The notes below the pieces were generated by a model. It saw only the letters and a list, made by a program, of their open reading frames with translations. It ran no database searches and had not been told where the DNA came from. Below are positions 2,371 through 61,844 of a DNA stretch of 64,000 nucleotides, one piece after another. How positions within the stretch are numbered: position 1 is the stretch's first letter; every line of letters starts with the position of its first letter. The stretch covers positions 1 through 64,000 of the IMG/VR virus record IMGVR_UViG_3300038441_001119. One strand, 5' to 3'. Made by a program: the position numbers and the translations under genes.

Positions 2371-4698
2371 TCAGAGTGTGTTCAGGTAATTGTTGATACG
2401 GTCAATGTGGTCCGTGAGGTCTTCAAGGCTAAGAAGCACAGCGGTCACATCGCCAGACATAGGGTTGAGGAATCCAGCAGTGTGAACATACAAAGCACCA
2501 AGACATCCGAATCCAGTAAAAGCATCGACTGTCATCTCTCCAAGAAGAGTTCCGTTTTGGTAGGCGTTTGTCACACCACCCGACCGAATGATGTAGATGT
2601 TACTGGCAGTACTCCGCGCCACAATTCCAGCATACGCGTCAAAGGCGCCACCAATACCACTCACAATCTCACCATTTCCAGTGTTCCAAATACGTAGAAT
2701 CTGTTCATTGGTGATGGTTGGAATGGAGTAATCACTTGCGATAACGGAATCACCTGATGAAGTAAGCCGCACAACAAGAGTGAAGTCTCCGGTAAGGGGG
2801 ATCCTCGTGCTTGTCAGGGCGTCATCAATACCATCAAACCTGACCACAGGCTTGCCGCTCACAAACTTCAGGGTAGAGCGTTTGGTTTCAGTAGTCTGAC
2901 CAAAGATACGCTCCGAATCAGTAAGTTCATCGCTCCATCCTCCAACAGGTGAACCATCAACTGCGGAAGGCACTGTGCATTCGTCATCTTGATATAGACC
3001 TAATGGAACATTGTCACCATTGTGGGTCTGCAGGCGGAGAGCGAGGGGCAGATCGACAAGAGGATCGATAACCGCAAGGATATTGCTCCGCTTTCCATTG
3101 GAATCCCATACGCGCACTTCGTCATCCTCAGTCACTGACAAAGGAATGGTTGTATTGGTAGTAGTGAATGTCGCACCAACGTTGACACCATTGACAGTGA
3201 GTTGATATGGAGGAATACCACCTTGCACCACCAAATCTCCACCTGCAAAGGCTCCTTCTGGTGCATAGATGTAGACATCGCCCAGATACTTGTTTAGGAC
3301 GTAGTTACGAATATCTTCTACAATGACGGGATCAGCGTCATGCGGAACAAGCCATGCTCCAAAGAATCGAATTGCAGCATGCGCCTGACCATCGCCGCCT
3401 AAGTAACGACCGCCTATAGCATAATGGGTCACATTCAGATTCTGGTCCGCAGCTACAGTTCCAATCTCAGTATTGTCTCTCCACAAAGTTATGTCACCGC
3501 CAGATGGCTCAAAGAGCGCCTCAAAGACATGCTTGCCTTGATAACTCGTCGAATCACTGATCCGGAAGTTCCCTCCTTGGTGTGCTGCAATATTGGTTCC
3601 CCCATTATTGCGAATGAGCATGAAATGTCCACCGCTGTAGTCCTCGTATTCACTGCCGCTACCAAAGACACGTGCGTACTGCTGACCTCCATTACCGAGA
3701 ACCTGATAGGCCACAAAAAGTCTGGCTCCAGTAAAGGACGTGTTGTATGTACCTCTGAGCCAGTCATCGAATCCCTCGAAGATGGAGGAAGGGCGACGGA
3801 TGACAAGGGCTGGATTGTTGCCGCTTTTGTTGGCAGTTACTACCTGACCTGTGGAACAAGCGAATGATGTGGCATTGTCGATAACTGCTGTGTCAGTGAA
3901 ATCAGCATCGAGGCGTTTATCTGTGCCATTGAGGGAAGCGAAGACCTGCACATGTTGAGCTGCATAGCGTATAGGGCTGCCGGTACCGCGATCATACGTT
4001 CCAATCTCGAAGTTTTCATCCGAATCAAACAAATTAACACCCGGTTGAACCGTTGCAGCGGAGCCTACCTGCGTCCATGTCGTCCCGTCGATACTTTCAT
4101 AGAATTTCAATTCACCATCGCTAACCTGTCTGGTAACTCTGACCCATCCCGGAACTCCGTCTACTAGAGTAATGTCCGCGTCTGATGCATTGGCAGTAAT
4201 TCCACCAGAACCATCCGGGGACATGTAGAAAACAAGTTTCCTATTGTTGACTGCAAACACAAAGCAGTAGTTAGCTACATACCATTTCGAGAACAGAGCC
4301 ATATTGGCGGACGAGGTGTGCCAAGATGCAGGACAAAGCTTAACCCTGATGTCGATATCTCCTGTAATGGAGTCTTCTGTAAGATTAGGTATACTGAAAT
4401 AGTTCCCAGCTACGCCGGGAAGGTAGCCATATCCTCTATTCTCTGTCAAAGGCAGATAGATAGGTTGGCTACCGCTTGTAGGCTGCGTTGCATTGGATGC
4501 TGTACCTCTGTTGATCGTAGTGTTAATCAAATCAAAGATACCAGCAGATGTACCGCCTGTCTTCAGTACGCCGTAGTCCATCTCCAGCCTTACAATGGGC
4601 TGTATATGATCCCACACAGGACCATCGGAGTACCATTCGAGATACTGAGTCAGGTCCACACTTACAATCGGACCATGTACGCTTCTAGACAGAGACAT
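2371..4698 (-). CDS. Virion spike/fibre protein with LamG/concanavalin-like domains
   Basis: 775 aa, beta-rich, LamG-like motifs (FDGIDD, GDVTAVLL); shares the LRLQTHNGDNVPLGLYQD module with 48201-51455. Confidence 0.7.
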   Translation of the reverse strand: MSLSRSVHGPIVSVDLTQYLEWYSDGPVWDHIQPIVRLEMDYGVLKTGGTSAGIFDLINTTINRGTASNATQPTSGSQPIYLPLTENRGYGYLPGVAGNYFSIPNLTEDSITGDIDIRVKLCPASWHTSSANMALFSKWYVANYCFVFAVNNRKLVFYMSPDGSGGITANASDADITLVDGVPGWVRVTRQVSDGELKFYESIDGTTWTQVGSAATVQPGVNLFDSDENFEIGTYDRGTGSPIRYAAQHVQVFASLNGTDKRLDADFTDTAVIDNATSFACSTGQVVTANKSGNNPALVIRRPSSIFEGFDDWLRGTYNTSFTGARLFVAYQVLGNGGQQYARVFGSGSEYEDYSGGHFMLIRNNGGTNIAAHQGGNFRISDSTSYQGKHVFEALFEPSGGDITLWRDNTEIGTVAADQNLNVTHYAIGGRYLGGDGQAHAAIRFFGAWLVPHDADPVIVEDIRNYVLNKYLGDVYIYAPEGAFAGGDLVVQGGIPPYQLTVNGVNVGATFTTTNTTIPLSVTEDDEVRVWDSNGKRSNILAVIDPLVDLPLALRLQTHNGDNVPLGLYQDDECTVPSAVDGSPVGGWSDELTDSERIFGQTTETKRSTLKFVSGKPVVRFDGIDDALTSTRIPLTGDFTLVVRLTSSGDSVIASDYSIPTITNEQILRIWNTGNGEIVSGIGGAFDAYAGIVARSTASNIYIIRSGGVTNAYQNGTLLGEMTVDAFTGFGCLGALYVHTAGFLNPMSGDVTAVLLSLEDLTDHIDRINNYLNTL

Positions 4699-4720: not shown

Positions 4721-7700
4721 TTAGAATTTACCAGTCTGATTGATCTTTTCACCAAATCCGACACCGTATCCAAGTCTCGGAGCAAAGTGCTGGTTCTCAG
4801 CGAAGTTGGTCTCAGCCCCACGAACAGCACTGTCTGCCAGCTGTTGCGACAGATACGATGTACTCATGCTTGCAAGCCAGTCCTCGTTGGCATGTGAAGC
4901 AGTACGAAGCCTGTCCATACGTGCAGTGAACGGTGGTTTCTCCTCAGTAGCCTTGAAGTTGGTCACACCATTGTTCTTCAGGTCCTTCAGCATACTCTTG
5001 GTGATCCTTGTACCACTGGTGTGATGCAACACATCGCCTGCAAGATACCCTGAAGGGATTGCGTTGTCCGTGCTGACATCAATGATGCTCTTGGGTTTCC
5101 AAGCTCTTGAAGCCTTGTTGTAACTGATGCTGTCATCAGGCAGGTTATCAAGATCTTCCATCTCTTCATCCAGATTGACAGTGCTCAACGCTCCCTTGGC
5201 AAAGATCTCCAGATTTTTTTTATCTGCTGATAGTCCTGAATCCGCATAGATCTCCTTCAAGCGGTCAACATAGTATCTGCGTGCTTCACCAAGGCCCTTG
5301 TAGTTGACCACATCACGCACATCAACGATACCTTCGCTCAGTGCATCGCCTGCTTCCACTTCATCGCCCTGTTTGACAAGCACTGGATAGCCCTGAGGCA
5401 CATACAGCTCCTTCTCATTGACTTTGACGAAGTGTCCACCTTGCGGGGCTTCACGAACCTCTGTAACAATGCCATCTTCCTCAGCGACAGTGCTCTTGTG
5501 CTGGTACTCACTCGGGGACTGCACAAACTGAGACAGGATCTCGAAGCCACCATAGGTACGCTTCGCCTTACCTTGACCTGCAGTATGCTTCGCACTGTTA
5601 CTGACTATCATTCCATTAGCCAGCACGAACAAGTGATCAGGATTAGCCACCTCGATGTCCCAGCATTGCTTGTACATTGGAATGGTTGCACGCACAGCCT
5701 GAGTAAGACCATACATAGTGACAATCTTACTTGGGAATCCCTGTCCATCATTTCTGAGAGTCCTTGTGATGCGCTCACCAAGCTCAACTTGTTTGCCATC
5801 ATTGTAGACAATCTTCTCATTGAGGAACTTGTGGTTCGCAGTGCACTCCACAGAGAAACTCTTTCCATTCACATTGGCAAAGTCCCATGTTTGTACAGGC
5901 TGTTCCCCCTGATTGAACTTATCGGTAACCTCAACAGGTCCCGTTCTGCCCAACTTGTCTGAACCAAGCACAATGTCACCAATACGGATCTTCTCAATGG
6001 CTTTCTCACTGCCATCCCACATACGCACCATGGTTCCCTCCGCCAAGCAAAGAGCACCTTGGGTCACAGGCTCACTGTTGTGTGTGATGAGCAGTCCCTC
6101 TGTAACAAACAGATGTGATTCGTTGTCCACAGTAATGTCCCATGTAGGAAGATTGCCAGCAGGATTAACTTGCTTCAGAAACGCAATGTCACGAAGACTA
6201 CGAATGGCCTTCAGCTTACGCAGCATCTCATCCAATGCGAACTTCTTCACTCCAAGCATGTATGGCAACAGATATGATCCCAGTCTGAAGATACCATTGG
6301 TATTGCGAGTGCGGATATCCCATTCCTTCACACCTTTCCTGTTGTACTCAGTTTTGAACACACCCGGAATAAGCAGTCGGTTCTTGATGAGCCTGAACAC
6401 GTCGTCTGCAAGCTGTTCGCTGCTGTTGGTGAATTTGATCACCTCTCCCTCTTTACCAATGTAGCCATCAGTTACAATCAAGCCTGCAAGGAATGCACAC
6501 ACAGAAGAATGGTCCCAACGAGAGAACACTTCATCAGGGATATGTTTGTCCTTGCATCTGCTTCCCCACAGACCAAGCTCCGTAGCACGTGTCTTGAGGA
6601 AGTTCTTGTACACTCGTGCATTGGCCCCATTGTTGAGTATGGTGAATGTGCCTTGCTGTGCTTCCAATGCCTTGGGACCGCTCAGTTGCATTCCTTTCTC
6701 TTGGAGATAGTCATTCAACTGGCGAACAAGAATGGGATCATAGCAGGAGAACGTCGCTGAACCACCTGCATCAAACGTACCATCGCCCAGCATTGCTCCA
6801 AGGATGAATGCAAGGTTCTCATGTATGCTGTCTTGTGGTTCCCAATGAGTGGAAGCAACGGTGAGGCCCTTACGGAAACGTGCTCCTTGTTTGTTGATAG
6901 GGACATCCTTCAGTGTGGACTCTTCACTTGTGACCAGCTTGTTGCGGCAGTCGTAAACACTTGCGTGCCACCTGTGATTCTCTGTCGCGACTACCGTCGT
7001 CTCTTTTTCCTGCGAATAAGTCGTAAACACATATTTGTTGCACGATTGGTTGCCTCTATCGTGCACAGCAGTCACCTTCGTCGGGGAGAACGTATTGTTA
7101 TGGTTATATCCCACCACAGTATCCCCAACCTTGATCTCCTCAATGTTCTTCCAAGTACTATCACCCATCAGCACCTTTGTACCCTCTGCAAGACACAAGG
7201 CGTTGGCAGCAGTAATACCCACATGCTCCCCTATCTTGGGAAACCTATGCTCGAACGTCATACCCACACACTTGCTGCACAGACCATCAGCCTTACAACT
7301 CAACGGTGATCTGGCTATGACCTTCTCCACTCCTTGTTTCTTGAGAGCTGCCAATGCCTGTCTGTCCAGCAGAGTACCAGCCTTCATACCACCAGTATCC
7401 CTAGCAAGCACTCTATTACGTACAGTACTGTCATCCACCTCATAGGAGATACCATTGTTTGTATGGCAGTCCTTGTCAGTGATCACAAGGTTGGCTGCAG
7501 TCTGTGAAGCAAGCTTACCGAAGTCACCACCTTTGGCAGTTGCAACCTTGGTGGAGATAACGGATGAACGTGCACCATATGTACCAGCCATGTACTCATA
7601 GGGTCTCAGTCCTTCTGCAAATGAGTTCCTGATGAATACTGGGATAGTCTTACCATTGGCATCCTGATACACACCGGGAGTGGATAGCATAGCCTGTACC

Positions 7701-8137
7701 TGTACTGGCTTACCCCGTGATCCCGATGATACTGCCATACCCAGATTGTTGAACTGGGCTTTGGCTGCACTCATGGTGTCTTTGATGAGAAGATCATTGT
7801 ACTTGTACCAGATGGCTTCCCGCTGTCTGTTGAACTCATCTGGATCATTACGGAAGGTTTTCTTTGCTTCCTTGATCTCAGCATCCATTGCCTTGAAGAT
7901 TACTCCCTTGTCTATGACTGGTACGAGATCCTTCAGTCCGATGGATTCACCTTGTTTGTATGATGCTTCCCTGCCCACTGTTGCGATCTTGTGGGAGATG
8001 TCCTTGTACTTGTCCGGATGTTTCTGGTACAGGGTGACAAGCATATTGTTGATGGACTTGTCATCAAACCCTGTGAGTGAGTCTTTCACATCATCAGGGA
8101 GGAGGGAGCGGATAAGTAATTCTACAGCCTTGGCCAT
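4721..8137 (-). CDS. rpoC: Multisubunit RNA polymerase beta' subunit, C-terminal piece, with two inteins
   Basis: SGSRG, NSFAEGL, bridge helix YGARSSVISTKVATAKGG, Zn site C-x5-C-x2-C, spliced trigger helix GEHVGITAANALSEPVTQGALSAKHTAG; start moved to MAKAV (8137). Confidence 0.92.
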   Translation of the reverse strand: MAKAVELLIRSLLPDDVKDSLTGFDDKSINNMLVTLYQKHPDKYKDISHKIATVGREASYKQGESIGLKDLVPVIDKGVIFKAMDAEIKEAKKTFRNDPDEFNRQREAIWYKYNDLLIKDTMSAAKAQFNNLGMAVSSGSRGKPVQVQAMLSTPGVYQDANGKTIPVFIRNSFAEGLRPYEYMAGTYGARSSVISTKVATAKGGDFGKLASQTAANLVITDKDCHTNNGISYEVDDSTVRNRVLARDTGGMKAGTLLDRQALAALKKQGVEKVIARSPLSCKADGLCSKCVGMTFEHRFPKIGEHVGITAANALCLAEGTKVLMGDSTWKNIEEIKVGDTVVGYNHNNTFSPTKVTAVHDRGNQSCNKYVFTTYSQEKETTVVATENHRWHASVYDCRNKLVTSEESTLKDVPINKQGARFRKGLTVASTHWEPQDSIHENLAFILGAMLGDGTFDAGGSATFSCYDPILVRQLNDYLQEKGMQLSGPKALEAQQGTFTILNNGANARVYKNFLKTRATELGLWGSRCKDKHIPDEVFSRWDHSSVCAFLAGLIVTDGYIGKEGEVIKFTNSSEQLADDVFRLIKNRLLIPGVFKTEYNRKGVKEWDIRTRNTNGIFRLGSYLLPYMLGVKKFALDEMLRKLKAIRSLRDIAFLKQVNPAGNLPTWDITVDNESHLFVTEGLLITHNSEPVTQGALCLAEGTMVRMWDGSEKAIEKIRIGDIVLGSDKLGRTGPVEVTDKFNQGEQPVQTWDFANVNGKSFSVECTANHKFLNEKIVYNDGKQVELGERITRTLRNDGQGFPSKIVTMYGLTQAVRATIPMYKQCWDIEVANPDHLFVLANGMIVSNSAKHTAGQGKAKRTYGGFEILSQFVQSPSEYQHKSTVAEEDGIVTEVREAPQGGHFVKVNEKELYVPQGYPVLVKQGDEVEAGDALSEGIVDVRDVVNYKGLGEARRYYVDRLKEIYADSGLSADKKNLEIFAKGALSTVNLDEEMEDLDNLPDDSISYNKASRAWKPKSIIDVSTDNAIPSGYLAGDVLHHTSGTRITKSMLKDLKNNGVTNFKATEEKPPFTARMDRLRTASHANEDWLASMSTSYLSQQLADSAVRGAETNFAENQHFAPRLGYGVGFGEKINQTGKF
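5597..6049 (-). mobile_element. Mini-intein (151 aa, no endonuclease)
   Basis: Starts CLAEGT, block B ECTANHKF, ends WDIEV..HLFVLANGMIVSN followed by Ser+1. Confidence 0.9.
6077..7195 (-). mobile_element. Intein with LAGLIDADG homing endonuclease (373 aa)
   Basis: Starts CLAEGT, block B ATENHRW, motifs LGAMLGDG and LAGLIVTDG, ends HLFVTEGLLITHN followed by Ser+1. Confidence 0.93.
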
Positions 8138-8175
8138 AGAGGTAGGATAAGGGAAGAGAGGGGGATTTGATAGAT

Positions 8176-8216
8176 AAAAAAGAGGAATGCCCTCCACAGG
8201 GGTTAGCTGTGGAGGG
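8176..8216 (-). terminator. Intrinsic terminator
   Basis: 10-bp stem CCCTCCACAG/CTGTGGAGGG plus T-tract. Confidence 0.7.
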
Positions 8217-32430: not shown

Positions 32431-34311
32431 TTAGTTGGCGTTGTACTGTCCGTCGACAGGTTCCAGCGGCCAGAGACCCTGCAGGGTAGGATGCTGGTTC
32501 CGAGCGTCGAGCGATGCCTTGACATAGTCAGTGTACGGTTGACCACGACGGGCAACGCGTTGTTCTTCGAGCCGCTTGCGGACATCGTCGAGCGTACACG
32601 TATTGTATTGCTTGCTGTCCTTGAAGATGAGCTGGTAAGCGCAGTTCTCCAATTCTTGCATCGTGGCCTTGTCCTTGAGGTAGGGGACGCCGTCCTTCGA
32701 GAAGAACACAGCGGGGATACCTTCAGCCGACTTCTTGGTACCGTCATCGGTAGCAGGGTTCTTCGACAGAGCGATGGGCTTGTCACCAAAGATACCGAAC
32801 GTCGCTTTGACAGCCATGGCGTGTGTGTCACGGGTGACGAACTGATAGCTGTAGCTTCCGATACCGAAGACGATATTCGTCGAGCAGAAGCCGAGAGCCT
32901 TCATCTGCTCAAGGATCGACTGGCAACGCTGAAGCGTGATCGAGTCACCGTAGATCAGACCAACGAATGGATTGATCTCCCGGTAGCCCTTCGCATTGAC
33001 CTTTCCGCCGAACTCATCCCAGAGACACTCCAGCGATCCGCGAAGGACCGGGGTGTCGACGACAGGAACCAGCTCGTAGTAGTCGTGCTGCGAGTTGGCC
33101 TTGATCTCGTAAGGCTGCCCCTTGTGCCGGACATGGAAGTAGCCGAGAACACGGATCTTCTCCAGAGCGAGTTTGAGGATTTCGTCTTCGATGCGAGTAC
33201 CGACGGCGATTTCCTCAACGTCATAGATCGCCTTGAGAGGATAGGCTTCGCCGCAGACGATCTTGATTGGATCTCCACTGTCAGGGCGGAACACCACCTT
33301 GGCAGGCTGTCCGTTTTGATTGGGCTTCCGGTCGAGGATGATGGGCTTGAGACGCTTGAGACCTTCCGTCATCACCTTCCAGTAGTTGTTGGTGTCCGAG
33401 ACAGCCGACACGATACCGGTAGGGTACTTCTTCGAGAAGAGGTTCTCCATGAAGCGCATCTCACCTTCCCACTTGTCAGTACCGCCGCCGTAGACAGCGA
33501 TACCAGCTTGGGTAACCGAGTGTTCCGTGGCCCGCACCGAGGTACCAATAAGGCTTTCAGTCGGGTAGTAGTTCCGAGTGAATGGGACCGCAGGCATGGT
33601 GTCCGTACCGCAGAAGCTGGTAAGGTGCGACATGCCGGTAAGACACGAGGCTTCCAGACCCTGCATACCTCGCATCGAGAAGTCGTGACCTTGGAATGGA
33701 ACAAAACCCATGTCGCCGCCGGTGTCCTCGCAGAAGCGATCCATCAGTGTACGATACAGATGCGCCGTGGTTGCAGCCGTGACACAGGGCCACATGTTCT
33801 GCGACAACGAGGTCTCCTGATGGTTGACAAGCCAGAAGAAGCGGCTGTCGGTGTTGTAGATCACCATCATCGGAACACGAAGCGGAGTGAGTGTACCTTC
33901 GGGAAGCGCCCAGATAGCCAGAGGCAGATAGCCGAGATCGTGCAGTTCACGTACGTGGTTGTCTCCGACAACACCGGGACCATAGAAGGCGTCGATGTTC
34001 TTGCGGTACAACAGTACGGCGATCTCCTTGTCGCACGAGAAGAAGGCTTCATCCCAGACACCGAGTAGCTGGTACTGGACCCAATACTGGCTACCGAAAG
34101 CAACCACCTCGGTAAGACCGGGATGGCGGGTTGCGCGAGCAGTCAGGTTGGCCATGATCAACTGCGTGTTGTCAGGGTGCTGTGGAAGGTGGTCACCTTT
34201 GTAGGCATCACATCCGGTCATGGGGTCTTGCCACGGGCGGTAGACCTTGTTGTTTGGAGTACGGCGAGCCTTCGGTTTGTCGGCTGCGATCTCTTTGGCG
34301 ATGTTTGTCAT
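32431..34311 (-). CDS. nadV: Nicotinamide phosphoribosyltransferase-like protein (Nampt/Namat)
   Basis: DAYKGDH, GYLPL..ALPEGT, HDFSMRG, GTDT, ATEHSV, VSDT, RPDSGDP, GLIYGDSIT, NIVFGIGS, RDT. Confidence 0.92.
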   Translation of the reverse strand: MTNIAKEIAADKPKARRTPNNKVYRPWQDPMTGCDAYKGDHLPQHPDNTQLIMANLTARATRHPGLTEVVAFGSQYWVQYQLLGVWDEAFFSCDKEIAVLLYRKNIDAFYGPGVVGDNHVRELHDLGYLPLAIWALPEGTLTPLRVPMMVIYNTDSRFFWLVNHQETSLSQNMWPCVTAATTAHLYRTLMDRFCEDTGGDMGFVPFQGHDFSMRGMQGLEASCLTGMSHLTSFCGTDTMPAVPFTRNYYPTESLIGTSVRATEHSVTQAGIAVYGGGTDKWEGEMRFMENLFSKKYPTGIVSAVSDTNNYWKVMTEGLKRLKPIILDRKPNQNGQPAKVVFRPDSGDPIKIVCGEAYPLKAIYDVEEIAVGTRIEDEILKLALEKIRVLGYFHVRHKGQPYEIKANSQHDYYELVPVVDTPVLRGSLECLWDEFGGKVNAKGYREINPFVGLIYGDSITLQRCQSILEQMKALGFCSTNIVFGIGSYSYQFVTRDTHAMAVKATFGIFGDKPIALSKNPATDDGTKKSAEGIPAVFFSKDGVPYLKDKATMQELENCAYQLIFKDSKQYNTCTLDDVRKRLEEQRVARRGQPYTDYVKASLDARNQHPTLQGLWPLEPVDGQYNAN

Positions 34312-48200: not shown

Positions 48201-51200
48201 TTAACCCCTCAGGTCATTCAAGTAGTCCATCAGATGTGCGTCAATGGTATCAAGAGATGCCGCTACTGCGTAAACATCTCCTTTGAAGAACCTGCTGGAG
48301 GTACCATCTATGTAACCGCCCACAGAGCTACCCATAGTCGGAGTGTTGAATGTACCGGCTCTGGAGTAGCGGGGAACCAGGTCGTTAACGTATACATAGG
48401 CTTGGCTACTACCATTCTTCATAGCAATAACCCCTCCGTCCTCTAGATTCACCGTAGTGGACATCCACTCCAGTGCATCATGTATACAGACACCGTAGGA
48501 GCCGGGAACATCAAACGAACTTCCTGCAGCACCGGAGCCAATAGACCAGCCAGTACCCAGCCCTCCATTACTGAAGGCAGAGCCTCCGGAATCGCTGTCA
48601 GGTCTGCAGACCACATAGGTCGTCAAATCTGTAGAGTTATCAGCGAGCGTAGTATTGGAGATAAGGATCTTTCTGGTACCTCCGGGGAAATTAACCACAG
48701 GAACACCGTAACGGAACCTAAGTGTTGGGCGCTGAGATGAATCCGGAGCTGTATACACTAGGCCAGATGAGGTCAATACGTCTTTCCACACGTAGATAGG
48801 ATCTCCATCTTCCATTGCTGGAATGGTCATAGCAGCGTCTTGATAGAGACCTAATGGGACATTGTCGCCATTGTGAGTCTGCAGACGAAGCTGATACGAT
48901 GGAGGCGGTCTAAGGGAGTGGGAGTGCTGCGCTACTTTCTGCAGATCTGCGAATGATAGGTATGCAGTACCTGCGAAGTACCCCGTTCCTTTATGCGTAG
49001 AAATGGAATATCCCGCTCCTCCGCTAATATCCGTACCATGCACAGCAAGTTCCAGATTACCAAGTGAAGCAGAGAAGGGAGAACTTAGTGTACCTGTGGT
49101 TTCGATATTGGACGTGGGGGTAATGGTGACCTGCCTAACGCTAGTTCCATTCCACGTCACGGCTACCGTATTCCATTTATTAGCAGTTACAGCTTGCGCG
49201 TTAACCGGACCGGTCACACCGATGTGCCCAAGGCCATAGATATTAGTAGTATTATCGCGACATAGGGCGGCTCCCCCGCTGCTGACTCCAAGCAATGTAC
49301 CATAGGGCGCGGTTTCTTCGGCAAGGAATGTGGCCACCAAGAAACCTGATGAGTTGATGCTGGTGGCTGGGAGGTCTGTAACCATACGAACTGTACCCCC
49401 GGTCATTGCTAGCACCGGAGTACCGTTGATGTAGTCAACTGATGGGCGTTTACCTGCGTCGGTCTGCGTTCCAACACCATCAATACCGCTCCAAGTATGT
49501 ACAAGATCCCCATCAGCAACTGCAGGAGTCTCACCTGAGTCTTTCCTCATTTTATACGGGAAAGGCGTTCTATCTCCCAAATGCGATTGAAGTCTGAGAC
49601 TAAAATCAATATCTACGATAGGGTCCACCGGAATCTGCGATCCAAGGTAATTACGAATGACTGTACGGTCGCCGTCCAGAGTATCCGATGCGCGGCTGAC
49701 GAAGATTACTTCTCGCACAGTACCGGACCATGTGGAGGGGCGGGAGTCTCCTATAACAGGATCCTCTCCTAAGGCAAACGTATTGTCACCAGTGGCGTGA
49801 AGTAACGTACTGTTCAACCAAGCTTTCCAATAACCATTCTTACTGGAGACTTCATATATGTACCAGTCCGACAGGACGGTGGAGGGGTTGCCAACAACCT
49901 TCCTTACATTACTGGCAAAATCATCATAGATTATCCCGTCCAGATATGGCATATGGCCACCATATTCCGCACCATTTCCTACATCACCAATTAGACCTCC
50001 ATCGCCGGTTCCGATCACTGGTGGATCAAGGTTGTTCTTTGCCAAGACAAATACGGACAGCTCTGAATATCCTTCTCCTTCAAAGGTTGGTAAATGGAGG
50101 CGGTCGCCAACTCCATCAAATCTTACACCAGTTTCATACAACGTCGGTGCAGAACCTACAGTATCAGATGTACCGGCACCGGCAAGTGTTCCACGGTTAG
50201 GCCACGACATGACAGACGCTCCGATACCGTCAAGGTCAGTATAGCGATATCGTGCGACAACGTCTGGCACGTTGACAATAGGATCCGTGTAGTTGTGGAA
50301 CGATCTGAGGTCCACAACTTCAGGAAGATAGTACGTAGCAATACCTGCGGCTGCGTCTACAGCTGAGATGATAGCTTCCCAGTCACGATTGTAGTAGTAG
50401 GGACCTCTGTGAGGGTAGTACCAATGACTCAGCAATACCAGCTCTCCATTTACAGGGATTACAGAGGGACCTCCAGAATCTCCCGCAACAGGATAGCGGA
50501 AGAAGGGGGACAGATTGTCTCCGGACAAGGTTCCATATGTAGCACTGGTAATGGAATCATCTAGATACTCCAGAGTATAAACAGCTGCCTCTCCAAATTG
50601 ATTCCTACCAAACGTATGAACGCCCCACTCGGTCTTCCTGAGGTAGTCACCAAGGTTGTCAGGCGGAATCAGTAGAGGCTTGATGACAGATGGTAAATCC
50701 TCGTTGAGTGCGGCTATGGCAATGTCAGTTCCCGGAACGAAGTAGGTTGCCAAGACTGTTCTATCGTAGACATCATCATCAGCACTTACAAACCTTACAG
50801 TGCTGCCTGTAGGGAATGGATTGCCGTAGTGGACTGCTCCGACAATATGCCGAGGGGTAATGAGATTGGCAGCCGATGTTTGACCCCACACGGAGTTCCA
50901 CACTGCCATACCTGACATACCGGCTGCAAAATCAGCACACCACACATCAGTATTACGGACATAGGACGCCTCCGTATGGGCAGCGGAAGAAAATATCTTC
51001 CACGTAGTCGGACTGACTGTTAGCCCTTCGGTTCTACCATCGATTTCGTCAAAGATATGCTTTGCGAGGGATCCGTCAGCCCACCTCGAAAAGGTATATG
51101 TTTCCGCAGGATCCAGTAGCTCTACATTGACCGTGAACTTCTGGGTCCTTGGTCCTGTGTAAGCCATAATCTCCGCTGCACCATCAGATACATACGTGAT

Positions 51201-51455
51201 ATTTCCTTCCGCGTCCACTGTGGCAATGGAAGGATCCAGACTGGCGAAGGTACCGTTGTTACCGAACCCCCTAGGTACGAGAACGCCTTCCTTATAGTAG
51301 GAAGCACCTTCATGCGCCCAGAGAACAGCGTCCTCTTGTACCTCTTCAGTAGTACTACCGGGGTCTGCAATGCGTTGGGTGTACTGCAAAGCGTACCCAT
51401 CATTGGGCAGCTTGCCTACAAGATAATGCGAACTAGAGCTGTCACCGACAATCAT
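48201..51455 (-). CDS. Multidomain spike/fibre: Ig-like domain, trypsin-like serine protease, LamG-like modules
   Basis: SLDPSIATVDAEG (Ig-like), LITPRHIVGAVH / TDIAI / GDSGGP triad, LamG-like repeats. Confidence 0.8.
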   Translation of the reverse strand: MIVGDSSSSHYLVGKLPNDGYALQYTQRIADPGSTTEEVQEDAVLWAHEGASYYKEGVLVPRGFGNNGTFASLDPSIATVDAEGNITYVSDGAAEIMAYTGPRTQKFTVNVELLDPAETYTFSRWADGSLAKHIFDEIDGRTEGLTVSPTTWKIFSSAAHTEASYVRNTDVWCADFAAGMSGMAVWNSVWGQTSAANLITPRHIVGAVHYGNPFPTGSTVRFVSADDDVYDRTVLATYFVPGTDIAIAALNEDLPSVIKPLLIPPDNLGDYLRKTEWGVHTFGRNQFGEAAVYTLEYLDDSITSATYGTLSGDNLSPFFRYPVAGDSGGPSVIPVNGELVLLSHWYYPHRGPYYYNRDWEAIISAVDAAAGIATYYLPEVVDLRSFHNYTDPIVNVPDVVARYRYTDLDGIGASVMSWPNRGTLAGAGTSDTVGSAPTLYETGVRFDGVGDRLHLPTFEGEGYSELSVFVLAKNNLDPPVIGTGDGGLIGDVGNGAEYGGHMPYLDGIIYDDFASNVRKVVGNPSTVLSDWYIYEVSSKNGYWKAWLNSTLLHATGDNTFALGEDPVIGDSRPSTWSGTVREVIFVSRASDTLDGDRTVIRNYLGSQIPVDPIVDIDFSLRLQSHLGDRTPFPYKMRKDSGETPAVADGDLVHTWSGIDGVGTQTDAGKRPSVDYINGTPVLAMTGGTVRMVTDLPATSINSSGFLVATFLAEETAPYGTLLGVSSGGAALCRDNTTNIYGLGHIGVTGPVNAQAVTANKWNTVAVTWNGTSVRQVTITPTSNIETTGTLSSPFSASLGNLELAVHGTDISGGAGYSISTHKGTGYFAGTAYLSFADLQKVAQHSHSLRPPPSYQLRLQTHNGDNVPLGLYQDAAMTIPAMEDGDPIYVWKDVLTSSGLVYTAPDSSQRPTLRFRYGVPVVNFPGGTRKILISNTTLADNSTDLTTYVVCRPDSDSGGSAFSNGGLGTGWSIGSGAAGSSFDVPGSYGVCIHDALEWMSTTVNLEDGGVIAMKNGSSQAYVYVNDLVPRYSRAGTFNTPTMGSSVGGYIDGTSSRFFKGDVYAVAASLDTIDAHLMDYLNDLRG

Positions 51456-53263
51456 TACGAAGAAGCATACATTAGGGTAGCACCGTTACAAGCAAGAAGC
51501 AGAGCCGAGGCGGACCCCAGAGCAACGGAATCATTTATTTTGAAAACAACAGAACGGGGATCGTTCACTGTAGATTCGGTGTAGAATCCGGTGTATACCA
51601 CATTGTGAGGAAATATCTCCCGCATATAATGGTTTACCTGCCCATAGTAACCCGGACCGGACGCATTGAATACAACCTCCGTGTTGTAATTGTATGTATC
51701 GAATTCTATAACACCGGTTCCACCTGCCGATACCGGCGAGTACGATTGGTTGATCGTAACTTTATCTGCATTCAGCGGCAGCGTAACTATCCCGTCGATG
51801 AGGTTCAGGTAATCTACGTAGTCAGGGTGACTTGAAAGCGTATAGATCTGATGACCGCGCCAAGGAAGCTCACCAGCCACCGTGACCCCATCTCCCATAC
51901 CAGTACAGTAGTTGAAATAAGGCACAGTGAACAGCTCACCTGCAGCAGGTACGTCCGTGCTAAGATCACCGTACGGGATCTCGCGGGGCTTCAGCCCAGC
52001 AACAGGCCACTCCCCATCAAAGTTAAGACGGGGAACTTTGGCAATGGAAGCAACATCCTTGATACCGATAACGTCAGGCTGATCAACCAAGAACAACACT
52101 TGTCCATTGTTGAGCTTGTTGAAGTATAGGCGAGGATTAGTGAAATTAGCGGGGGCGGGAGCCGTACCCCCCGAAATCCACGTCCAGTTGCCTCCGGGGC
52201 TGTCCACGTTAGGACCTCCACCGACACGTCTCCACAAACGGTGATCAGGGAACCCGAGGGTTCCCAATGGGTTTTCATATAGAAGTTCCCATGCACTATT
52301 GACGCTGGACCAAGTCATACTGACGCCGCCGAAAAATTCGTGAACAGGGGTGCCGTTTTTATAATAGGCCAGCTTGCCGTTAACGATGTCACCGTTAGTG
52401 TACCACTCTCCCCAGAAGTAATAATCTTCCGGCAACATGTTACGAGAAGGGTACACCCAAAACGAGTCCCAGTAAGCTGTGGGATCTTCAGGCTCTTCCT
52501 CTAATTGAATAGCCGTTCTGGAACGTGTTTCGACCATCCTGAGTACAGTAGTCGAAGTTGTAGCAGTGCTGTTTTCTGCAAAGGGCTGTGGTTGATAACC
52601 GGAGAACCACCCGATGTCGCCTTCCATGATCATGGCGGCGGAACCTCCGTGAAGAGTGTTACTGATCTTCACCACAGGATATGTGTTGTTAGCAGTAGAG
52701 CCGGTGAAGGTCGTAACCTGTCCAGTCGTAGTGGTATGCTGCGCGTTAGCCAGTGGTGCCTTCAGAGCAAGGTCCGAGACAAGGTTAACTACGGTCGACT
52801 GATCTTGAGTACCGGTGTGATTGGAACGGGCAAGCAGGGAAGCGTTGTCAAGGTTAGCGGTAGCACCCGGAGAAATGTTGGAAAGCTTGATATGCTCCGC
52901 GGAAGTCATGAAGCCCGATTGAAGACTGTCCACGTAAGCATGGGCAGATCCTCCAGCTCCTATATGACTGCTCAATGAAGACGACACGAAAGACAGTTCG
53001 TCTGTAAGAACGGACACATCAGTAGAAAGATCTGAGACTTCTGTCGTAAGATCATCCACGGCATCTTCAAACCCGACTATGTCTGATGATTTGGCAAGTT
53101 CAGCCCATCCACCATCCGTCGGAAACTTATAGTAAATACGATTACCGTCCGATGCAGTCTGTCCAAAGTCTCCCGGAGTTTCAGGATCAACATTAGACGG
53201 AATACCAAAGTAAGGGTCTGGAATACCATTCCCGAAAGGGTTAGTTACAACGAAATCCGACAT
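51455..53263 (-). CDS. Tail fibre protein
   Basis: LLARSNHTGTQ..STVVNLVSDLALKAPLA motif; Ser/Thr/Gly-rich. Confidence 0.75.
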   Translation of the reverse strand: MSDFVVTNPFGNGIPDPYFGIPSNVDPETPGDFGQTASDGNRIYYKFPTDGGWAELAKSSDIVGFEDAVDDLTTEVSDLSTDVSVLTDELSFVSSSLSSHIGAGGSAHAYVDSLQSGFMTSAEHIKLSNISPGATANLDNASLLARSNHTGTQDQSTVVNLVSDLALKAPLANAQHTTTTGQVTTFTGSTANNTYPVVKISNTLHGGSAAMIMEGDIGWFSGYQPQPFAENSTATTSTTVLRMVETRSRTAIQLEEEPEDPTAYWDSFWVYPSRNMLPEDYYFWGEWYTNGDIVNGKLAYYKNGTPVHEFFGGVSMTWSSVNSAWELLYENPLGTLGFPDHRLWRRVGGGPNVDSPGGNWTWISGGTAPAPANFTNPRLYFNKLNNGQVLFLVDQPDVIGIKDVASIAKVPRLNFDGEWPVAGLKPREIPYGDLSTDVPAAGELFTVPYFNYCTGMGDGVTVAGELPWRGHQIYTLSSHPDYVDYLNLIDGIVTLPLNADKVTINQSYSPVSAGGTGVIEFDTYNYNTEVVFNASGPGYYGQVNHYMREIFPHNVVYTGFYTESTVNDPRSVVFKINDSVALGSASALLLACNGATLMYASS

Positions 53264-60623: not shown

Positions 60624-61844
60624 TTATACCGGATTATTGCCTATTTGAGGACCTTGTACTGGAGCAGGGACTGGCATACCTCCCATAGGAGCAGGAGGCA
60701 TCATAGGAGGAGGTCCGATCTCAACGTTATCCGACAGTCTTACCTTCTTGTCTCTGATGGCTTGCATAGCTGTAGCCTCGTCAGGGAAGTAGTGGGTCTC
60801 CTTGGCAGGACGTTGGTGCGCGGAGTACAGCCCAAGGATCTGCTCGTGCTTCAGTGCGGGAACAATCTTGTCAGCTTCCTTGATGGAGTAAACCATCTTG
60901 GAAGGCATAAGGATGTCCTTGGCCTCATCCACAGACTCCTTCATGGAAGGAACGTGGATGTTCAGAGTATCACCGTCGTGGTCAAGGTTAAGGCCAGTGG
61001 ACACATATGGATTGGTAGCAACGTTGTCTCCGTCGATTAGTTTTGGCCATCCTGCAAGGACGTTGTACTTGTGCCACGCTGGAGCGCGAGAGTAGATAAC
61101 AGGACGCTCAGTTACTTCCCGGTCCAGTGCTTTCTTGGCGAAGTCCGTACGCTTGGAAACGTGCTCAAGGGCAGACAGGGAACTCATACCTGACTGCACA
61201 AGGCGGCGTTGGATATATGGGCCGTACACCTTCCATGCCATGTCAATAGGGATACCGATCTGATCCATGTCGAGATCTGGATTAGCGGTAGCAACGCCAC
61301 GTCCGACAGAGTCCATTGTCTTGGAGAATAGACGGCGATGAAATATAGAGTGCTTGGGACCAGCTCCTTTTCCAATGAGATGGTCCAGGAAGCCGCTGAC
61401 ACCGCGTTGTTTTGTCTTAGGGTTGACGGCCTCGCCATACCCATAAACAGCTTTAGCAGCGTTGTAGAGTTGGTATGCAGCATCTTTGGAGCCTTCTTCT
61501 CCAACCTCACCCTTGAGATCATTGTAGACTCCCTTGTAGTTGATCAGGTCCTTGTACAGCTCGTTTGCGTCACCGGGCATGAAGGTGTCGCCTGTGATGG
61601 AGAACGGTCTGAAGACAGGGGGAATGACTGGTACCTTGGAGATGGTCAGGTCAGCAGGCGCAATCTCATTCTTGCGCAAACCCGCAATGACGTTGAGGAT
61701 CTTGACGGCAGGTCCGCGCTTGGTCTTCTTGCCTGTAGCCAGATCATCCCTAGCTTGTTTCTCCAGAGCGTCAATGTCGACTTCCTGCAATGCCTTGTAG
61801 ATGGCCATTGGTCCGGTTCCATAACGTCTTTCTTCCTGCTGCAT
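60624..61844 (-). CDS. rpoC: Multisubunit RNA polymerase beta' subunit, catalytic (N-proximal) piece
   Basis: VPVIPPVFRP, RRLFSKTMDSVGRGV, SRAPAWH, catalytic NLDHDGD (60969-60989; NADFDGD equivalent). Confidence 0.92.
   Translation of the reverse strand: MQQEERRYGTGPMAIYKALQEVDIDALEKQARDDLATGKKTKRGPAVKILNVIAGLRKNEIAPADLTISKVPVIPPVFRPFSITGDTFMPGDANELYKDLINYKGVYNDLKGEVGEEGSKDAAYQLYNAAKAVYGYGEAVNPKTKQRGVSGFLDHLIGKGAGPKHSIFHRRLFSKTMDSVGRGVATANPDLDMDQIGIPIDMAWKVYGPYIQRRLVQSGMSSLSALEHVSKRTDFAKKALDREVTERPVIYSRAPAWHKYNVLAGWPKLIDGDNVATNPYVSTGLNLDHDGDTLNIHVPSMKESVDEAKDILMPSKMVYSIKEADKIVPALKHEQILGLYSAHQRPAKETHYFPDEATAMQAIRDKKVRLSDNVEIGPPPMMPPAPMGGMPVPAPVQGPQIGNNPV

Follow-up and report, generated by a model that had tools for sequence, protein, structure and literature searches.

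Is a phage RNA polymerase gene that carries two inteins nine codons apart in its catalytic loop a regulated device, or have two mobile elements settled side by side? The question is raised by the precursor gene for the C-terminal half of the beta' subunit of a large phage's multisubunit RNA polymerase, recognised by its open reading frame (ORF) and by Pfam, phmmer and Foldseek matches at 4721..8137 on the minus strand of a 64,000-nt stretch of DNA. This stretch, hereafter the window, covers positions 1-64,000 of IMGVR_UViG_3300038441_001119, a 212-kb IMG/VR contig. A sequence-only reading had described the pair as tandem related inteins flanking a 9-residue micro-extein and had proposed that cross-splicing between them could act as a post-translational switch. 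We consider it very probable that they are two separate selfish inteins that settled independently at neighbouring hotspot positions in the trigger loop of this subunit.

The minus-strand ORF spans 4721..8197, and the ATG at 8137 was taken as the likely start because the N-termini of homologues match there (MxxAxxLL). The precursor is 1138 aa long with both inteins and would be about 615 aa once both are spliced out. Its 314-aa N-extein (7196..8137) holds a bridge-helix-like segment and ends in ...GITAANAL, the N-terminal base of the trigger loop. Next come intein 1 (6077..7195), which has 373 aa from Cys1 to a His-Asn end, was delimited by comparison with intein-free homologues and was assigned by Pfam, AlphaFold2 (AF2) modelling and Foldseek; the 9-aa, 27-bp micro-extein SEPVTQGAL (6050..6076), which is the N-terminal arm of the trigger loop; and intein 2 (5597..6049), a 151-aa mini-intein running from Cys1 to Ser-Asn, assigned by Pfam, alignment with larger inteins at the same site and AF2. 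The C-extein (4721..5596), 291 aa plus the stop codon, opens with SAKHTAG. All of these features lie on the minus strand. The span 5597-7195 given by the sequence-only reading, which did not state the strand, is exact, with the first base of the intein 1 Cys codon at one end and the last base of the intein 2 Asn codon at the other. A single continuous ORF runs through both inteins, which is not the arrangement of a split, trans-splicing intein.

The host part of the precursor scores 43.3 bits for Pfam RNA_pol_Rpb1_5 (PF04998), for which the cut-off is 28.5. With the intein-free homologue P0013 (612 aa) as query, phmmer finds bacterial beta' chains in the PDB at E ~1e-36, and in a Foldseek search the AF2 model of the whole precursor matches beta' chains at E 1e-24, RNA polymerase chains being the sole matches. 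The P0013 segment ...GEHVGITSANALSEPVTQGALSAKHTGG aligns with a 28-residue stretch of Taq beta', and its trigger-loop stretch ...GEHVGITSANAL-SEPVTQGAL-SAKHTGG likewise aligns with Taq beta'. This alignment spans the GAR... of the bridge helix and a 13-residue stretch, identifying the protein as the C-terminal half of beta'. In the E. coli chain register, residues 124-336 of the P0013 query correspond to 715-946, with P0013 H326 equal to E. coli H936 and L322 equal to M932, provided that the last residues are ungapped. Numbered on P0013, intein 1 occupies site 313, the equivalent of E. coli beta' I923|G924, and intein 2 occupies site 322, the equivalent of M932|R933; the micro-extein SEPVTQGAL corresponds to G924-M932 (GEPGTQLTM), and the C-extein opens four residues ahead of the catalytic trigger-loop His (E. 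coli H936 equivalent). The earlier assignment of the spliced segment to E. coli beta' 924-936 holds through this register. In an alignment of 26 intein-free relatives, E315, Q319, L322, K325 and H326 are invariant. The sequence-only reading was also right that nine residues of the trigger loop of a beta'-like subunit separate the two inserts and that both need to be removed to rebuild such invariant residues.

Are both inserts inteins? The whole protein matches Pfam Hom_end_hint (1.1e-14) and LAGLIDADG_3 (2.3e-10). Hom_end_hint and Hint matches fall in both inserts, and LAGLIDADG_3 (1.7e-11) is confined to intein 1; intein 2 alone scores 33.6 bits for Hom_end_hint against a cut-off of 32.1. 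Each insert is preceded by Ala-Leu and followed by Ser, and comparison with intein-free homologues puts the boundaries exactly at C1 and at N|S. Intein 1 begins C-L-A-E-G-T-K and ends L-I-T-H-N, and intein 2 begins C-L-A-E-G-T-M and ends M-I-V-S-N, giving the junctions ...THN|S and ...VSN|S, respectively. The T-x-x-H of block B reads T-E-N-H in intein 1 and T-A-N-H in intein 2, and block F, W-D-I-x-V...H-L-F-V, is common to both. Thus, the standard splicing residues (Cys1, block B, block F, the terminal Asn and the +1 Ser) are all kept in both. Intein 1 also carries two LAGLIDADG motifs with the acidic residue kept in each, ILGAMLGDG (aa 131-139; 6779..6805, minus strand), which was aligned with other large inteins, and LAGLIVTDG (aa 236-244; 6464..6490, minus strand). 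It therefore has the double motif of a LAGLIDADG endonuclease, and intein 2, which has no such domain, is a mini-intein. The insertion points, nucleophiles, C-terminal residues and Hint fold indicate that both inserts are inteins of class-1 type, predicted to splice, in agreement with the original description of one LAGLIDADG-bearing intein and one mini-intein. Intein 1 looks like a full homing intein with an endonuclease that is intact by sequence.

The predicted structures give a similar picture. AF2 modelled the whole precursor with a mean predicted local distance difference test score (pLDDT) of 78.6 and the cassette with 8-aa flanks with a mean pLDDT of 85.4 and a predicted template modelling score (pTM) of 0.73. 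Both models consist of two self-contained beta-rich domains, with an alpha/beta domain within the first. The pLDDT is 81-98 for intein 1 and about 90 in the Hint core of intein 2, and confidence in the cassette is low only at the termini, at residues 385-387 (within the micro-extein) and in the intein 2 loop that replaces the endonuclease. The micro-extein is modelled as a low-confidence flexible linker joining the two Hint domains. The best Foldseek matches of the cassette are PI-SceI (E 5e-18), TliVMA and PI-PfuI, followed by the mini-inteins Ssp DnaB, Npu DnaE and Mtu RecA.

How often do inteins occupy this protein, and where? A search with the N-extein gave 115 family members at the 90% cluster level, and their insertions were mapped against P0013 by global alignment, a procedure that worked for these proteins and fragmented on the more divergent set collected afterwards. 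That second set came from a phmmer search with intein 2 (5597..6049, minus strand) against 1.84 billion representatives, which returned 495 matches at E <= 1e-3 and brought the combined total to 252 family representatives; inteins in these were located by hidden Markov models of the Hint N- and C-terminal blocks. All but one of the 137 new top matches to intein 2 (136) are members of the same RNA polymerase subunit family, and judging from these matches the family of intein 2 looks largely confined to one host protein. The sole non-polymerase top match, P0208 (1285 aa), has seven evenly spaced Hint N-block matches and zero C-block matches, and by this pattern it is a repeat protein of Hint-N-like units.

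In the first survey, 60 of the 115 members are intein-free and read ...ANAL-SEPVTQGAL-SAKH... unbroken, and the remaining 55 hold 73 inteins. These inteins occupy eight positions, three in the bridge-helix segment (196, 197 and 205) and five in the trigger loop (313, 317, 322, 323 and 326), and all of them begin Cys-(Leu/Ile) and end in Asn, followed by Ser or Thr. Inteins of two size classes, 128-164 aa and 361-418 aa, are found at every site except 205, which holds large ones only. All four states of the two sites in the window are seen: neither occupied, 313 only, 322/323 only (mini or large in each case), and both occupied. Related phages with zero, one and two inteins, which the sequence-only reading had suggested looking for, are therefore all represented. 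Across the 252 representatives at least 12 sites are occupied (182, 192-194, 196, 197, 205, 313, 317, 319, 322, 323, 326 and 327), and neighbouring inteins are separated by 0-12 aa. The 313+322 pair with its 9-aa micro-extein occurs in 11 of the 252 (five mini+mini, four large+mini and two large+large), and the 313+323 pair in 4. Up to four inteins occur in one protein, as in P0121 (1219 aa; 197+205+313+322) and P0157 (1516 aa; 197+205+322+326), where intein makes up more than half of the precursor. Micro-exteins shorter than nine residues are found as well, with 3 aa (TKH), 4 aa (SAKH/SSKH, STKF, SGLN) or 5 aa (TQMAL), in P0204, P0018, P0125, P0138, P0157, P0129, P0185, P0198, P0164, P0048, P0095 and P0140.

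In P0217 (1288 aa, residues 199-863) two inteins appear to abut directly (...LIVHN|CLDADT...), without a single extein residue in between. Cys1 of the second intein would then serve as the +1 nucleophile of the first. The pair may be genuinely back-to-back or nested, or it may be an artefact of assembly. Among IMG/VR loci, L074 and L075 have Cys-Leu intein starts after GEPA (site 317) and STKH (site 326), and 80 more distant viral loci are mostly intein-free, with the trigger loop SEPVTQ(S/A)Q(I/L)SSKHSGG.

Is intein 2 a copy of intein 1? The two are homologous (BLASTP, 37% identity over 76 aa, E 5e-12), as the description "tandem related" implied, and this homology is common to all inteins of the family. 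No special relatedness accompanies it. Over 125 Hint-domain columns intein 1 and intein 2 are 30.4% identical, and site-313 and site-322/323 inteins drawn from different proteins are 30.0 ± 4.5% identical (n=410). The nearest relatives of intein 1 are site-313 inteins of other phages (45%), and that of intein 2 is a site-322 mini-intein (49%), with inteins at 205, 323, 326 and 196 nearly as close (45-48%). In a tree of Hint domains (IQ-TREE), 12 of 13 site-313 inteins, intein 1 among them, form one clade (support 99/87), and intein 2 lies beyond a branch with 96/90 support in a large clade of 196/197/205/322/323/326 inteins. Forcing intein 1 and intein 2 to be sisters costs 48.5 log-likelihood units and is rejected by the approximately unbiased (AU) test (p=0.022). 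On this evidence the two are separate lineages and not a tandem duplicate, and the shared C-L-A-E-G-T start and A-L|S context are best taken as features of the family and of the sites. The phylogeny that the sequence-only reading had proposed as a check thus places the two inteins on opposite sides of the 96/90 branch, not as sisters.

In other members of the family, inteins of the same protein are mutually closest. The two mini-inteins of P0099 (sites 196 and 322) are 62.7% identical (support 99/98), and mutually closest pairs also occur in P0055 (two mini-inteins, 197 + 323; support 98/93) and in P0091 and P0097 (196 + 322). In each case one lies in the bridge helix and the other in the trigger loop, a pattern that suggests a within-gene move to a new site or gene conversion between copies.

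What kind of intein, then, is intein 2? Site-322 mini-inteins align with large site-322 inteins minus a LAGLIDADG domain of about 250 aa, and over the last 27 residues, as displayed, the mini-intein of P0019 is identical to the large site-322 intein of P0007. Given this relationship, intein 2 is best read as an endonuclease-deleted member of a site-322 lineage that has, or had, an endonuclease of its own; such a loss is the usual late stage of the homing cycle. Intein 2 does lack the penultimate His that intein 1 has, as the sequence-only reading noted, and ends in Ser-Asn. The oddity which that remark implied disappears in the survey, where the penultimate residue is Ser in 21 of 21 site-322 inteins of the first set and in 68 of 73 of the larger one, and His is dominant only at site 313. 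The Ser-Asn terminus thus appears to be a trait of the lineage and not a defect of a single copy. Non-His penultimate residues (Gly-Asn) are documented in working inteins elsewhere (PMC1635734).

Do the two sites gain and lose inteins separately? The extein tree shows different intein states in host proteins that are less than about 1% apart. One group of near-identical exteins has no intein in P0012, a mini-intein at 313 in P0015 and a large intein at 322 in P0017. In a second, P0014 has a 313 mini-intein, P0007 a large 322 intein, and P0008, P0010 and P0011 have none. A third comprises P0019 (mini-inteins at both 313 and 322), P0022 (large, 313), P0025 and P0026 (mini, 313) and the intein-free members of P0020-24, and a fourth comprises P0075 (large, 322), P0078 (none), P0081 (large, 317), P0095 (three inteins) and P0096 (large, 196). 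Therefore, gain and loss appear to be ongoing at each site separately. Consistent with this, occupancy of 313 and of 322/323 shows no significant association in the first survey (6/7/27/75; Fisher p=0.19, with phylogeny ignored). The same presence/absence polymorphism is indirect evidence for the predicted site-specific cleavage of intein-free alleles by intein 1.

From the anatomy, motifs, fold, lineages and polymorphism we infer that each of the two inteins splices, independently of the other, and that intein 1 has an active endonuclease. After translation, each Hint domain would fold by itself and excise itself by the class-1 route, in which Cys1 would form a thioester, the N-extein would be moved onto the +1 Ser, and the terminal Asn would cyclise. 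The two ligations would restore ...AANAL-SEPVTQGAL-SAKH..., the trigger loop with its catalytic His, and only the doubly spliced protein would have a working trigger loop. Activity is not expected of the precursor or of the half-spliced forms, in which a folded domain would interrupt the mobile catalytic loop. The endonuclease of intein 1 would home into empty site-313 alleles. Intein 2 could spread by ordinary recombination between co-infecting phages, through repair of a break that a full site-322 intein had introduced in trans, or by co-conversion with intein 1. Co-conversion is plausible as one such route, given the spacing of 27 bp.

Several points weigh against two independent inteins. 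The survey sets are metagenome cluster representatives, and the second was assembled on the basis of similarity to an intein, so that its numbers and those of the first give occurrences and not frequencies in populations. The Hint tree was built on 129 columns, and the extein tree is a FastTree tree. In the extein clade of the window, P0001-P0005, a large 313 intein is present in 5 of 5 members and a mini-intein at 322 or 323 in 4 of 5, a pattern compatible with some linked inheritance of the inteins at the two sites. Finally, Asn cyclisation can be slower in some inteins that end in Ser-Asn, and intein 2 could splice slowly or conditionally. The clade pattern is the main sign of linkage. It speaks for a stronger form of the co-conversion idea raised by the sequence-only reading, in which intein 2 enters new alleles mainly by co-conversion after the endonuclease of intein 1 cuts 27 bp away, making the pair one mobile unit. 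The recurrence of 313+322 and 313+323 pairs also speaks for such hitch-hiking, as does the published statement that a mini-intein beside a full intein "must rely on co-homing, if it homes at all" (PMC10643990). Nevertheless, mini-inteins at 322/323 also occur alone (9 in the first survey), next to another mini-intein or next to inteins at other sites; the cut could come in trans from large, endonuclease-bearing site-322 inteins that circulate on near-identical exteins; the co-occurrence of the two sites is not significant; and the P0004 and P0005 mini-inteins have nearest relatives other than intein 2, even though the site-313 inteins and exteins are close. Moreover, two neighbouring haloarchaeal MCM inteins co-invaded an empty allele only very inefficiently (PMC10643990). 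Co-conversion as the main route thus deserves some weight as a possible but rather unlikely account, and the lone mini-inteins and the site-322 inteins with their own LAGLIDADG domain make it a route that is not required.

The remaining alternatives fit the same evidence less well. A recent tandem duplication of one intein into a second nearby A-L|S site would explain the shared C-L-A-E-G-T start and the identical -2, -1 and +1 extein residues, and the sister inteins of P0099 and P0055 show that within-gene moves or homogenisation do occur. For the pair in the window, however, identity at the background level, closer same-site relatives of each intein in other phages and the AU test lead us to reject it, and we regard it as extremely improbable. 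Bacterial beta' is known to carry lineage-specific insertions in its trigger loop, SI3 being the one in E. coli, and the inserts could by analogy be non-splicing domains kept in the mature enzyme, or dead intein relics. Yet the fold is Hint (plus LAGLIDADG) and not SI3-type, every splicing residue is retained in both inserts, presence and absence are exact at C1 and N|S in near-identical exteins, and the insertions fall between residues that never vary in the family. We therefore reject an SI3-like retained insertion, and a reading of this kind has scarcely any probability left. The switch envisaged by the sequence-only reading would pair the N-terminal half of intein 1 with the C-terminal half of intein 2 in cross-splicing, with loss of the micro-extein. 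Alternatively, one intein or both could splice conditionally, and in either case the pair would gate the RNA polymerase after translation. Cys1, the A-L|...|S context and a homologous Hint fold are indeed common to both inteins; unspliced forms are expected to be inactive, so that the rate of splicing would set the timing of active enzyme; and conditional splicing has been reported for one of the two inteins of M. smegmatis DnaB (PMC6195587). Against this, the Hint domains are only about 30% identical and belong to different lineages, the cassette is modelled as two self-contained domains, and a cross-spliced product would lack the invariant E315, Q319 and L322 of the catalytic loop. In addition, the same host protein carries zero or one intein in many phages and the states vary between near-identical exteins, which is the pattern of selfish gain and loss and not of a conserved regulatory device. 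No result obtained here supports a switch, and we judge it highly improbable. Distinct lineages and a 313+322 pair in 11 of the 252 representatives are, moreover, largely what the sequence-only reading had itself named as grounds for abandoning its proposal. A variant in which removal is ordered or conditional (redox- or temperature-dependent, or slowed by the Ser-Asn terminus), with a pool of inactive beta' precursor activated after translation and cross-splicing as an inactivating side path, is also quite improbable. If it were true, the catalytic loops of the polymerase would be subject to regulation as well as harbouring selfish elements.

Which known systems does this resemble? Multi-intein genes, mini-inteins, neighbouring sites in catalytic motifs and inteins in RNA polymerase subunits are all established. 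The closest parallel is provided by the haloarchaeal MCM-a to MCM-d (CDC21) inteins (Turgeman-Grott et al. 2023, PMC10643990), which, like those of the phage family, occupy close sites in the catalytic region of one essential protein. Both systems show all combinations of occupancy, a mix of full and mini-inteins and frequent gain and loss on the extein tree. In MCM, two full neighbouring inteins hinder joint homing into empty alleles (PMC10643990). The phage family differs in that its host is an RNA polymerase subunit, with at least 12 sites in place of 4 and spacings of 0-12 residues. Inteins of RNA polymerases were described by Goodwin et al. 2006 (PMC1635734) in Mja rPol A', Mja rPol A'', Nph rPol A'' and eukaryotic or viral RPB2, RPA2 and RPC2. 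These share with the phage inteins conserved sites near the active centre of a multisubunit RNA polymerase and, in some cases, an end other than His-Asn; unlike the phage inteins, they are single in each gene, at scattered sites and in polymerases of cells or of eukaryotic viruses. PI-SceI (the yeast VMA1 intein), TliVMA and PI-PfuI resemble intein 1 in being Hint domains with an inserted double-motif LAGLIDADG endonuclease (Foldseek E 5e-18 to 6e-12), and differ from the cassette in sequence (14-18% identity), hosts and insertion sites. M. smegmatis DnaB likewise carries two inteins in one essential protein (DnaBi1 and DnaBi2; PMC6195587), one of them a mini-intein (PMC10643990). These two are reported to differ in splicing rate and in their response to stress (PMC6195587); in contrast to the phage gene, conditional splicing was demonstrated there by experiment, and the inteins are not described there as lying a few residues apart. 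Our literature search found no paper on inteins in the multisubunit RNA polymerase of a phage, on inteins in a bridge helix or trigger loop, or on inteins only a few residues apart, and no insertion coordinates for archaeal rPol A''. The trigger-loop/bridge-helix intein hotspot is thus apparently undescribed.

The rest of the window places the gene in its setting. The beta' subunit of this phage is split over two genes, and the partner, a 406-aa N-terminal half without an intein, is encoded at 60624..61844 on the minus strand (Pfam RNA_pol_Rpb1_2, 1.1e-16; phrog_25354, 7e-41), so that the half with Rpb1 domain 2 lies 55 kb from the C-terminal half. No further Hint domains were found in the 64-kb window. 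A megablast search with 8 kb around the gene found no match among 50,697 phage records, and tblastn found only relatives of about 30% identity, in Vibrio phages D69, D181 and D148, Salmonella phage Arash and Rhizobium RHph phages. The nearest cultured relatives thus share only about 30% identity, and gp216 of Salmonella phage Arash (606 aa) has no intein. A search of genome contigs matched a single contig of a metagenome-assembled genome and gave no clue to the host of the phage. The window also encodes, at 32431..34311 on the minus strand, a 626-aa homologue of nicotinamide phosphoribosyltransferase (phrog_448, E 1.6e-155), a phage-carried NAD-salvage gene. Three large ORFs, all on the minus strand, have no PHROG match: 2371..4698 (775 aa), directly downstream of the intein-bearing gene, 48201..51455 (1084 aa) and 51455..53263 (602 aa). 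A borderline immunoglobulin-like domain on the 1084-aa ORF is the sole Pfam match among the three.

What does the locus mean for the biology of this family? The feature in the window, most probably two independently settled inteins, is ordinary in mechanism; what stands out is its setting in a crowded, family-wide hotspot in a small phage polymerase subunit. Of greater interest are that hotspot itself, the extreme shortness of its micro-exteins and the cases in which one protein holds sister inteins at separate sites. There is also a consequence for annotation, since these beta' genes are longer than expected by a factor of two to three and the sources of most give only the label 'hypothetical protein'. 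The family offers a natural system for asking how inteins colonise non-allelic sites, whether neighbours help or hinder one another in homing, and how little extein on each side is enough for splicing.

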